Part shown: one piece after another, positions 1,988 to 7,900 of the stretch | How the letters are laid out: every line of letters begins with the position of its first letter | Numbering within the stretch: the first letter of the stretch is position 1 | Assembly: GCF_006345805.1 (NCBI RefSeq) | Contig: NC_043002.1 | Location: forward strand, 117,862,001 to 117,926,000 | Source of the DNA: Octopus sinensis | Taxonomy: Eukaryota | DNA length: 64,000 bases | Reading direction: 5' to 3' | Position numbers and translations under genes: made by a program | The notes under the pieces: model-generated | Told to the model about the DNA's origin: nothing | The model's input: only the letters and a program-made list of their open reading frames with translations | Database searches by the model: none

Positions 1988-4900
1988 CTGGAAGAATTAA
2001 TTACATTTAAGAGATTCAGAAAACATTGTACAACTTAAATGCATACATATACATATAGTATATTACTTAACACACACACACACACACATCAGTATAGACA
2101 CAGGCATAGCTGTGTGTTTGTTGGCTTCTCAACCATGTGGTTATGTGTTCAGTCCCATTGCATGATACATTGGGTAAGTGTCTTCTACTGTAGCTCTGGG
2201 TCAACCAAAGCCTTGTGAGTAGATTTGGTAGGCGGAAACTGATAGTAAATCATCACGTGAGTGCGTGTGTCTGTTTACATTTGCAATCAACAGGACAAAA
2301 GTATGCTGTGTGGTGGTGTTTTCAGCTGATGATGATGATGATGATGAAACAACTATTTAATGAGTTGATGATCCTTTTAGTACTATACACCTCACAGTGA
2401 TGCACAATGATTAATTTATCACTTCACAACTTTTTATTGTATACTATGTTCTAAGATGTTTTCAGGACTCTTCAAGCCGGAGAAACAGAGTAAATCTACA
2501 CTGCACATACTACAAACAGTCTCTGAATTGCTAAATGTATTGTTGACAGGTTTTGTTTTTTGCTATGCCAGTTAGGATGACATCAGATATGGTTGAACAT
2601 TTACATTAGTATGAATTATGTTACAAAAAGCATTGCTTCAACACACACAATAGACATATGATATACTTACTTTAATTGGTGAGACTGTTGGGCTTTTAGG
2701 AGACTTCTTTTGAATACTTAGTCTTTGAGCTTTGTATCGTATTAATCTATGACCCACTGTTTCTGGCATGTAGTGAATGACATGTGTCGTATGACTATAC
2801 ACCTGACTGAGGTAGCTGCTAAATACAAATTTTTGAAGGTTTTCACTGGCACTCAAATTAGGATAAAAAACAGTTCTAAGTGGAGCCAACAAGAAAAGGT
2901 CTGAATTTTTTGATTTAGGAGTTTTAGTAAATGAATGAGAGTACTGTTCTGCATAAATCCTGTAAGCAGATTTCAGACACAGAAACACAGCCAACCACCT
3001 GGATAAATATTAAAGAGAAAATAATTAGAGATAATGAAAAATTAAATGTATATATATATATATATATATATATAATAATAATAATAATAATAATAATAAT
3101 ATTAGGGAGTAAATCCAAACTTACAGGGAAAAATTAGATTTAGGATTAAATCTAATTTTATAGTATAAATATATATATGTATTATATGTATTTTATTATT
3201 ATTTTTATTTATTTATTTTTATTTAAAAAAATTTTTTTAATTATTTAAAAAATTTTATTTATTTTTTTAATTATTTAAAAAAAAATTTTTTATTATATTA
3301 AAAAAATTTTTTTTTATTATATAACTATCAAAAAGTATTAAAAGTTTAATGTAAGATAAAGAGTAAATACACTATGATCGTTTCATGCCCGTAACCAATT
3401 CGAATAACAATAATTTAAATTCAATTAATAATTCAAATTATGGTTACAGTCAATCTTCAGGTTAATTGTAATATTTTAATAAATAATCAGAAATATTTAA
3501 ACAATATTTTTAAATAATATAATAATTTTTCTTATAAAAAACTCTATTATCAAACTAGAAACTTAACGATTATGATTATGTCAAAACATCGATTATAACG
3601 TTAAATATTAATTTTAATTTTTAAGTATTAATTTTTAAGGTAAGAAACCCACCAATAATCTAATATCAGTAATAGTCAATATCTAATTACATAAATATTT
3701 TACAAAAAAAATGACTATTCATATTATTAAAAATATAAAATTTAAATAATATATAAATGTATATAAATATTATAATTAAGATCTAAAATAATCTCTATAA
3801 ATAAATATATATGCACATATAATAAAGACCTAATAAATTAATTTTTCATATTTAAAGATGAAATAGCTAATTTCAAAAATACAAACAAACAACCTTAAAC
3901 GAACGCTATAGCAAATTAACTATCTTTATATCTCGTTGGCTAAATAATAACTATCAAAAATATTATATTTAAAATACTTAAAGAAATAATCAATTCGTAG
4001 TTATATAGTATCAAATAAATACTATAAATATATTTATCAATGGGAATAATAAAACTAGCAAATATCAATTTAAAAAGACAATATATAAGTTAAAATAATA
4101 ATTATAAGAAATTTAAAACTACAATTAATGCTATTAATACATGTATATACATTAAACCTAACTTTAAACAACTCGTATACTTGCTATCAAACAACATATC
4201 TATCGCTAAGTAAATTCTTACGAATAAACTTAAAGTTAATATCTAATAATTATATAGAAAATTACAATAATTAGATCATTACATAAACAACGATATTTAC
4301 ATAAAAAACAATAATATTACACCATAAGACTTATAAAATATTAAAATTTAAAGATCTTAAATATAAATATATACTTAGCTTAGCGAGGTTTTGTGATGAA
4401 CTAAAATTTCGAATTAGAAAACGACTTTACAGCGTTTATAAGAATACTCGTGGAATTACGTTATTAGCAAAAAAAGAATAAATTGTTGAAGAATTCATTA
4501 AGCGTGAGGAACTACAAATACGCTTTATCAATGAAGATTGTGAATGGGAACAATTATGGTTTATCAATAAATGTAAATAGAATGAAGTCACAAATAAAGA
4601 ATAGAATCACTCTATACTAAAAGATTTATTAATAAAATAACTATGATAAATAATACTTAATACAGAATAAATTAAATAATTAAAAACCACTAATTATTAT
4701 ATATACTCTAAAAATCTTATATGATTAATAAAAATATAAAAAACATTTTTTATAGTAACCCCTCAACGTACTATAAATTCTTTCCCAATTACTCTTATAA
4801 TTATAAGCTAAAACTAGTGATCATAACCAAAATCTCTAAGATACTTATCAAAATTTGAGGTATAACTATATATGTGTATACATATATAATTAATTAATTT

Positions 4901-7900
4901 TATTTCTATGTATTGGCTTATGATTTTCACTGTTTGATTTGCCTAATAGCGGTTTTATCTCTAATTTAATATAATATATATATATATATATATTCTACAA
5001 ATAATTGTCCTTTATTTGCTTTTGGTAAAGATATAAAGGAAAGCTTTCGAGTTGAGTTTTAACATTCAGAGATTCTCTAAAATGAAGACAAGCCAAACTT
5101 AATGAAAATACTTAGTTTTAACATTCAGGAATTTTGCTTGAAAAATATTAAAATTTACATTAATTACATGGTGTAGTTATGTAGCATAAAATTTTGTTTT
5201 AATTTATAAATTGAATTAATCTTATTAAAAAATTACAGCAAAGAATGATTCTAACATGTTTAGTTTAAAAGAGAAAGAAACACTAGTTGTGCAGTCAATT
5301 TTCTATTAAACATGTTACAAATACTCAACTGTGTCTATATTAAAACTTGACATTCAACTGGTGTAGCACACTTCACTTGAAATAACTAAACTTTACCTTT
5401 TAACTCTTTTGTTATCATATTTCTATTGAAATACATTGCCTTTATTTCAATTAATTTTGAAAATAATGCAGAATTTAGTAAAATAACTTGGCCATTATTA
5501 AGGTGGTGTTTGGAACATAAGCTAACAAAAGTTTGATGGCAGGTTTTAATTTTTATTTCACTTTAAAATGGGAAGTTTGTATCAGAAGCAGAGATGGTAT
5601 CAAAAAGGTTAAGCAGGGGACAGTTATTTAATGGTCAAGTGTGTTTTATTAGTTCAATGTACAAGTCAAAAGTGCCACCTGTGAGACATCATAAACAAGT
5701 GAATAAGGAACTGAGAAAGAGACATTAATTCTCACCGGGCTAAAAGGCTACCACACATTTGATTTTCAAGTTGCTGAGGACTCATATCGGTGAAACGGAT
5801 GAATGAAAAGAGACTATTTACAGATGATCCTGATTAAACAAAAATATAAGAATAAATCAGGTTTACAGTAAAATAAGATACACATTGACAATCAAAGTAG
5901 AGGCATGAAAAAACAAAAATACTGAGCATGAGTACAAAGTATCTAGTCACAATGTAAAAAGATTTCAATTCACTTGGATGTGCCCCATTTATACCATCTG
6001 TTGGTTATGCTGAGGCCCAAATCTTTATCTGCTGCACTAGACTCACCCCAAATCTCTAAAAGTCCCCCTCTGGTCATGAGTGACCATGGGGTTGCACCTA
6101 GAAAGTTACCCTCTGAGGCACAAGTCCTGGCAAGGTTGTTTTTGAAAGAGCAGCAGTCGCCCATGCATACCAGCCCCCCTCTCCACCAATATTATCGAAA
6201 AGAAAGGCAAAAGCCAATACAGTTTCACATCAGTAATGTCGTAACTCATTTCTGCAGCTGACTGAACTGGACTGATGTGAAACAAAGTGTCTTGCTCAAG
6301 AACACAATACACAGCCTGGCCTGGGAATCAAACTCATAACTTCATGACCATGAACCTGACACTCTAACCACTGAGTCATGCGCCTTCACACCCCAAAGCT
6401 CTCGTCACAATATTAACAACTATATCAGCAGCACTTGCCTGACACACAATCAAAGTGATGAAAAAATTCATCTTCTTCACTTTCACTTGCCCTAGAATTC
6501 TCATTTACCTTCTCTAACATTTCTGTTAACTTTCTGGACAGCACTATTTGATTTAACCACTCAATCTCTCTTTTATAAACCCATCGATTTCCATTATTAT
6601 CTCTCTGCCAATTTTGGATGATCTTCCATTTCTCTTCTTAGATGGATATCAATATTTGGTAATATCCAACAGAAATACATTTCTCTCCATTCACTCCTTT
6701 TCTGTTGCTTTTTCTCTACCATTTCATATCCACAGCTGAGAAACTAAAAAGATTATACACTCTCTTACCAAGAAGCTGCAATGCTATCCCAACTGTTACC
6801 TTTAACCCTTTCGTTACCAAACCGCCCGAAAAAATTTTGGTTCATGTGACCAAGCTGCCCGTATTTACCTATTCATAATTAAATGAGAATATCAGAGCAA
6901 ATCTTCTTTAGTACATTCGTGAAAACACGTGATTATACTTCGTAAACAGTTCATCTACAGTTTTGTACAACGATTGAAGTGTAATCTTAATTCCGTGAAT
7001 TTTGGGAGATTTTTTTCCGAAATTTGTTCCTATTGTGTTTTCAAAATTTGTAATTCTGACCAAAAATGGATACGAATTTCATTATATCAAGCAGCGAGTC
7101 AGAATTTGAAGGCTTTTCTACTGAAGACCTTGATAAATCTAACTCTATGACGGAAAAAAAAAAAGCAAGTGGTATTTGATAATGAATCCGATGTTTCATT
7201 TTCCAAAAATGAAAGCAGTGAATCCAAGAGCTCCAACAGCGATAAAGAAAATGAATTGGCACTTGAATGGAGTGAAAATTTAAAAACTGTTTCTTTCAGT
7301 GATTTTTCTGAAGAAACTGGACCAAGCCACAGTCTTTCCCAGGAGAGTATACTATTTCTTGTTACTTTTTCGAATGAGCCTATTTGAAATCATTACGGCG
7401 GAAACAAACCGTTACGCTAAATGTAAACAAAGCAAAAGAAAGGATAGTTTGTTATTTCCCACAACCTTAAATGAAATTAAGGCCTATTTTGCCATAAATA
7501 TTATTATGGGTATCAGAAAGTTACCCATAAATATTATGGGTATCAGAAAATTATGGCGGAAACGAACCGCTACGCTAAATGTAAACAAAGCGAAAGAAAG
7601 AATAGTTTGTGGTTTCCCACAACCTCAAATGAAATTAAGGCCTATTTTGCCATAAATATTATTATGGGTATCAGAAAGTTACCCAGAATAACAAATTCTA
7701 TAGTAAAATTTTGTTGTATACCCAATTGAATATTAGCTAATAACCCATTTTCTATAGCGATGTTTGAACAAAAATTTTAATAATTTTATATTTTGTTGAA
7801 TTTACCTGTATTTACCTATGACAAAAATTATAGTATAGAATTGGTTGAGAACATTTCATTAAATTATCTTCCAAAAATCACATTAATATATTGATAAATA

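Follow-up and report, generated by a model that had tools for sequence, protein, structure and literature searches.

Oligohymenophorean ciliates use genetic code 6, in which TAA and TAG (together TAR) encode glutamine, and they have AT-rich genes with short AT-rich introns; arginine is strongly preferred as AGA in AT-rich ciliates. The capture of mitochondrial DNA at breaks, which gives rise to nuclear mitochondrial segments (NUMTs), is also a known mechanism. Both systems bear on an AT-rich block found in a 64-kb stretch of the Octopus sinensis genome (contig NC_043002.1, 117,862,001 to 117,926,000; hereafter the window). The block, here called the island (3102-4972, 1871 nt, with a core of about 1.6 kb at 3340-4968), lies in an intron of a minus-strand gene predicted to encode an INO80-type SNF2 ATPase, and a preliminary description of the DNA had read it as a ciliate-code gene. 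Here it is tentatively proposed that the island is genuine and was inserted recently, as non-coding, AT-rich DNA, into a (TA)n tract that the INO80 intron already had.

The island consists of 45.0% A, 36.7% T, 10.3% C and 8.0% G (GC 18.3%); nowhere else in the 64 kb does the GC content fall below 22%. It contains 24 CpG dinucleotides versus 15.4 expected, for an observed/expected ratio (o/e) of 1.56, while host segments have 0.34-0.37, the gene body around the island 0.25-0.35, and the host sequence at 5000-5700 exactly one CpG. The 1-kb CpG o/e values of the island (1.35-2.1) are the maximum of the window. TG and CA, with o/e of 1.28 and 1.24 in the host, are under-represented in the island, and TA (0.78 in the host) is not depleted in it (Table 1). 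The island-host dinucleotide distance (delta*) is 0.223, and among host windows only those consisting of (GA)n lie farther away. The dinucleotide statistics switch at about 3000-3100 and about 4970-5000, and both the TA o/e and the TG+CA counts are host-like from about 5000 onwards. These positions coincide with TA-type microsatellites, (TA)13 followed by (ATA)10 on the left and (AT)~13 on the right, as detected with Tandem Repeats Finder. Directly after the (ATA)10, at 3102-3107, the island opens with TTAGGG, a lone copy of the telomere unit of animals; chance would place about 0.1 such hexamers in the island. The core is close to block-shuffled random sequence, with A/T runs not in excess and a normal 6-mer diversity, in contrast to three host segments analysed in the same manner. 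No similarity to the island was found in the other 62 kb of the window, in agreement with the earlier remark that it has no host repeats. The block at 3102-4972 is thus real as a compositional island with microsatellite borders, unique in the window, and the data support a discrete, insert-like sequence without the CpG decay of the host.

The layout of the proposed ciliate gene is also present as described. The model starts with an ATG at 3349 and joins the segments 3349-3599, 3640-4209 and 4379-4646 through two GT-AG candidate introns of 40 and 169 nt into one open reading frame (ORF) of 1089 nt (363 codons) that table 6 leaves uninterrupted up to a terminal TGA. This openness is at the level of chance. 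The longest TGA-free frame of the island has 430 codons, and 15% of the shuffles that preserve dinucleotides have a frame at least as long (p=0.15), and the island has 17 TGA triplets versus 17.7 expected. In-frame TAA/TAG make up 29 of the 363 codons (8.0%), with 8.5% expected from composition. The GC content at the three codon positions (GC1/2/3) is flat in the first two "exons" (0.20/0.20/0.21 and 0.17/0.20/0.16), and the longest standard-code ORF in the island is at most 61 aa. The preliminary description had named a lack of codon periodicity and of table-6 homologues as refuting the gene, and within the frames and collections searched neither was seen. The base-by-phase chi-square reached p<0.05 in no 240-nt window of the island, and the Fourier period-3 power was unremarkable throughout, with z=1.2 for "exon 1", z=-0.46 for "exon 2" (570 nt) and z=0.49 for the whole core. 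A 780-nt host repeat ORF, used as positive control, gave z=3.5; the test has low power at short length, as it detected (p<0.05) one of five genuine host exons that were about 200 nt long.

Some coding flavour is kept only in the segment 4383-4646, none of it significant, and the segment is ambiguous. The bias GC1>GC2>GC3 claimed for it exists numerically (Table 1), with p=0.22 by chi-square and p=0.24 for period-3 (88 codons, chosen after the fact, at a length where the test is weak). All seven of its internal TGA triplets fall in one phase (NNT GAN), it contains a 36-nt internal repeat in phase, and eight CpG lie within 140 nt, mostly in CGN arginine codons. Over the whole model, 6 of 10 arginine codons are CGN, unlike the AGA preference of AT-rich ciliates.

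Homology was searched for in several collections. No Pfam match was found in the peptides of the model or in the six table-6 frames of the island. The query for the large protein search was the exact stop-free 58-aa piece at 4305-4478, which has no relative among 1.84 billion protein representatives, no match in viral contigs and no homologue in PHROGs, NCBIfam or PDB. Its lone listed protein match was rejected as the sum of weak chance repeats in a repetitive protein, a JGI metagenome match as a chance octapeptide in a bacterial-type contig of 40% GC, and ArrB (NCBIfam, 17.7 bits versus a cut-off of 450) and PAT1 (PDB, E 0.2) as chance matches. Ten standard-code ORFs of the island and its junctions were also looked up by exact match, and none is in the collection. 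The ciliate telomere repeats C4A2/G4T2 and C4A4/G4T4 are absent from 3041-5000, although they are not required of an internal fragment. Within the reach of these searches, the ciliate reading fails the refutation tests of the preliminary description, with neither statistical nor homology evidence in its favor. What stands of the preliminary description is the island, its borders, its intron and the ORF layout, and from its interpretation the discrete, insert-like block without CpG decay between TA-type microsatellites; the frame length and codon bias are no more than chance, and the reading as a ciliate gene is not supported.

Other identities were examined with similar results. The island has no tRNA genes or Rfam families, and no mitochondrial tRNA (aragorn -mt), and with the invertebrate mitochondrial code (code 5) its longest ORF has 85 aa; eight universal 12S/16S motifs score no better in it than in shuffles. 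A terminal inverted repeat at the island ends is not significant (p=0.09), no transposase or reverse transcriptase (RT) domain is found in any island frame, and there is no second copy of the island in the 64 kb. Derivation from a host element by hypermutation was considered and rejected, the longest match to the rest of the window in a purine/pyrimidine alphabet (26-27) being equal to the null. The borders are sharp and the CpG, TG and CA frequencies undecayed, and the sequence has no coding, RNA-gene, transposon or mitochondrial hallmarks.

The foreign origin proposed earlier is not demonstrated by the composition. The distinguishing signature of the island lies mainly on the axis of methylation decay (CG up, TG/CA down), and this is shared with unmethylated DNA of the host itself. 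At the other end of the window, 61000-64000 has a CpG o/e of 1.1-1.5 amid CpG-depleted DNA, and it probably represents the promoter or 5' end of INO80 (minus strand) in an unmethylated state. Within this host region, 61-62.6 kb has o/e values of 1.26 for CG and 0.88 for TG/CA, and delta* is 0.123 between the island and the host unmethylated 5' region versus 0.227 between the island and bulk host. The host intron just to the right of the island has 21-25% GC. Because the island is nearer to the host 5' region than to bulk host, and the adjacent intron is already this AT-rich, a non-host donor is not required, and the composition does not show origin from another organism. What the CG/TG/CA signature does indicate is that the island is undecayed in a methylated gene body, and hence either young there or protected.

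The gene containing the island is, as judged from its sequence, an INO80-type SNF2 ATPase. Stop-free exon reads of the SNF2 ATPase occur on the minus strand at 12.7, 15.7, 16.1, 16.7, 20.0 and 21.3 kb, with Pfam SNF2-rel_dom matches in the exons at 21.2, 16.7 and 12.7 kb. The exon at 16.7 kb has exon-sized relatives at 81-97% identity, several of them named 'DNA helicase INO80', and a DBINO domain lies upstream in an orthologous locus. This locus is on an 82-kb ENA contig of a distant relative (ERZ24894579 ctg24074l), with 53-60% identity in the two exons flanking the island. Among the relatives found in the collections searched, it is the only longer one and the only one to reach the orthologous intron; the relatives of INO80 exons with 96-97% identity come from contigs of only 1-3 kb, and the exon adjoining the island had no match in the search for close relatives. 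The flanking exon peptides match ctg24074l at 14709-14783 and 15720-15764 (tblastn), which agrees with the intron 2999-5735 reported earlier. The orthologous intron has 936 nt of ordinary composition and lacks the AT-rich block, and by length arithmetic the intron of the window without the island and one microsatellite copy would have about 820 nt. The INO80 locus of the relative (6660-15764 of the contig) is much more compact overall, with exon spacing about 2.4 times shorter than that of the window.

Several lines of evidence support the insertion. The borders are sharp and located at TA-type microsatellites, where dinucleotide usage switches; the island-free intron resembles in length the intron of the relative without the block; and a CpG o/e of 1.56 with TG and CA below 1 means essentially no methylation decay. 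That the insert is non-coding is supported by the lack of coding signal and of homologues. In the proposed mechanism, a break in the fragile TA tract of the INO80 intron would have been repaired with captured or copied DNA, leaving TA repeats on both sides of the insert. The insert would be antisense-neutral, spliced out with the intron and without a function of its own, and it would have spent too little time in the methylated gene body to lose its CpGs. As donor, an AT-rich unmethylated repeat compartment of the host is the default guess, with a foreign donor as a less likely sub-case. We infer the physical presence of the island in the DNA of the animal, as well as the break repair, the youth of the insert and the host donor. 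Several points weigh against this proposal. No second copy or donor exists in the window, even in the purine/pyrimidine alphabet, and the insert has neither a definable terminal repeat nor a definable duplication of its target site. The core lacks the TA depletion and the AA/TT excess of host DNA, including its unmethylated 5' region (three host segments tested). The 1-3-kb contigs of the close relatives stop short of the intron, so that the presence of the island in the genome is presumptive.

The preliminary description preferred an assembly artefact, a mis-join of parasite or commensal DNA through microsatellites. In the form weighed here, DNA of an AT-rich unmethylated contaminant, a ciliate or other protist living on or in the animal, would have been threaded into the intron through the TA microsatellites during assembly, gap-filling or polishing. 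This is considered unlikely, although it retains appreciable weight. The composition differs from bulk host, with CpG undecayed, both junctions are in TA repeats, no other copy occurs in the window, and the statistics of the core are unlike those of host DNA. Apostome ciliates are real parasites of cephalopods for which there are essentially no sequence data beyond ribosomal DNA (PMC4988119), so that a negative database search is uninformative about them. In contrast, the window has no N and runs through very long (GA)n and (AG)n microsatellites, one of about 300 nt at 40547-40841 and (AG)46 at 14812-14903, both spanned without gaps. Such a gap-free run suggests a long-read assembly, in which a block of 1.9 kb would lie within single reads; if the window was built from long reads, as is probable, a contaminant would have to be joined chimerically twice in the space of 2 kb. 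With its 20-25 nt, the right-hand (AT)n falls below the k-mers or overlaps commonly used in assembly and is too short to mislead an overlap assembler or one with k>=31. Because of the gap-free window and this short repeat, a microsatellite mis-join is possible but not favored. Searches of viral, metagenome, prokaryote, phage and plasmid collections gave no match. Dicyemids, the commonest renal parasites of octopuses, have a genome GC of 36.7% (PMC6736024), which makes them an unlikely source of an island with 18%. That an AT-rich, unmethylated protist with TAR as glutamine, such as an apostome parasite, donated nuclear DNA to the germ line is very unlikely, whether it carried a whole gene or at least a last exon at 4383-4646. 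The three-exon model open under table 6 with its TGA end, the block of A/T runs upstream of the ATG, and in 4383-4646 the order of GC1/2/3, the single phase of the internal TGA and the in-phase repeat would suit it. Against it are the chance levels of ORF length and TAR, the flat exons 1 and 2, the lack of period-3 even in 570 nt compared with the control ORF, the lack of Pfam matches and of relatives of the 58-aa piece, the missing ciliate telomere repeats and the CGN arginine codons.

Explanations within the host genome were also weighed. The island could have originated in place, as an old low-complexity expansion of TA, TAA and A/T runs that later diversified, or as an AT-rich patch protected from methylation. 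Simple A/T repeats flank and partly form the block (3049-3330), the neighboring host intron is AT-rich, and the host introns of the gene share the direction of its A>T skew. This origin is nonetheless improbable, since the 1.6-kb core is complex rather than repetitive, point mutation to 20-28% GC would be so slow that CpG decay and TA depletion should have set in meanwhile and neither is seen, and the orthologous intron of the relative lacks the block. Similarly doubtful is a non-autonomous host transposable element targeting TA repeats, resembling a miniature inverted-repeat transposable element (MITE), a Helitron or the tail of a long interspersed nuclear element (LINE). Insertion in a TA tract and a minus-strand end in ...CTAA followed by (ATT)n(AT)n are consistent with such an element, and host elements of other kinds are present in the window, while the absence of a significant terminal inverted repeat, of a transposase or RT domain, of a 3' hairpin and of a second copy in the 64 kb argues against it. 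A NUMT, for which the TA tract would have captured mitochondrial DNA from the control region, the rRNA genes or both, would account for unmethylated-type DNA, and the A>T and C>G skew with about 8% G in 3450-4350 is reminiscent of cephalopod mitochondrial DNA. With no code-5 ORF above 85 aa, no mitochondrial tRNA, no Rfam match and the 12S/16S motifs at chance, a NUMT is highly improbable.

Table 1. Coordinates of the island, its borders and the surrounding INO80 intron in the window.
Feature	Position	Strand	Description
INO80-type SNF2 ATPase gene intron	2999..5735	-	2737 nt; donor GTGAG at 5735, acceptor AG at 2999-3000
Host exon, downstream	2802..2998	-	encodes ...SSYLSQ; based on translation and tblastn to ctg24074l
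Host exon, upstream	5736..5813	-	26-aa peptide; tblastn to ctg24074l 60% identity, E 1e-7
Left boundary microsatellite, (TA)13 then (ATA)10	3049..3101	.	Tandem Repeats Finder: (TA)13 3049-3074, (ATA)10 3072-3101
AT-rich island without CpG depletion	3102..4968	.	GC 18%, CpG o/e 1.56, TG/CA o/e 0.80/0.86, TA o/e 1.06
Sub-block of ~9-10% GC	3160..3330	.	A and T runs; imperfect 22-, 31- and 54-nt tandem periodicity; the 'poly-A/T leader' of the preliminary description
Proposed 'exons' 1 and 2 (3349-3599, 3640-4209)	3349..4209	+	40-nt GT-AG candidate between them; table-6 open, without coding signal
Sole coding-like segment	4383..4646	+	88 codons, four in-frame TAA/TAG, TGA end, GC1/2/3 0.38/0.24/0.20
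Right boundary microsatellite, (AT)~10-13	4969..4993	.	Tandem Repeats Finder; ~20-25 nt

The window also contains repeats of other kinds. A GC-rich (~50%) family forms tandem units of about 320 nt at 1-766, which are 82-84% identical, and has opposite-strand copies at 43678-44010 (with 63-nt sub-repeats) and at 54619-55240 (74-82%); its long open frames have no Pfam domain. An INO80 intron contains, at 7284-7726 (+), part of a piggyBac-type transposase (Pfam DDE_Tnp_1_7, E 1.5e-8) in which one segment is duplicated. At 53855-54634 (+), an open frame of 260 aa has a PHD finger (E 1.4e-4, just under the Pfam cut-off), with two diverged copies (~65% identity) at 58448-58914 and 37754-38009; together they are probably a host interspersed repeat family. 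Finally, 17900-18400 is a GC-rich (43-45%) low-complexity block with a CpG o/e of about 0.8, whose frames read as His/Thr/Pro runs.

The main value of the analysis is negative, since it indicates that a long TGA-only frame in G-poor DNA is no ground for reading a ciliate gene. If the island is physically present, it would be a clean example of a large insertion, recent and not due to a transposon, at a fragile TA microsatellite in an essential chromatin-remodeller gene, tolerated because it is intronic, and its undecayed CpGs would serve as a clock for how gene-body methylation in cephalopods erodes CpG. Should it be an assembly artefact, a flag in the reference is warranted. A bearing on eukaryote-to-animal horizontal transfer would follow only if a protist donor were proven, in which case ciliate integration would be a rare documented transfer of protist DNA to a mollusc.

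In comparison with known systems, the island resembles the nuclear genes of oligohymenophorean ciliates in being very AT-rich, with A/T runs preceding an ATG, a TGA-terminated frame whose only interruptions are TAA/TAG, and GT-AG candidates of 40 and 169 nt. It differs from them in the lack of codon periodicity, of in-frame TAR depletion and of a homologue, in an ORF length at chance, in arginine codons that are mostly CGN, and in having no telomere or other ciliate landmarks. Like the contaminant or chimeric segments of draft animal assemblies, it is compositionally alien, single-copy in the window and joined through low-complexity sequence; unlike them, it has host sequence on both sides, short junction repeats, a gap-free, long-read-like window and no match to a contaminant genome. 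From filler DNA and NUMT-type insertions, in which extrachromosomal or ectopic DNA is captured at double-strand breaks in fragile AT-rich microsatellites, it differs in lacking mitochondrial hallmarks, and its break-repair origin is putative. It shares with these captures a discrete, non-coding sequence without transposon hallmarks, located inside a (TA)n tract that is kept on both sides, and the signature of an unmethylated donor.

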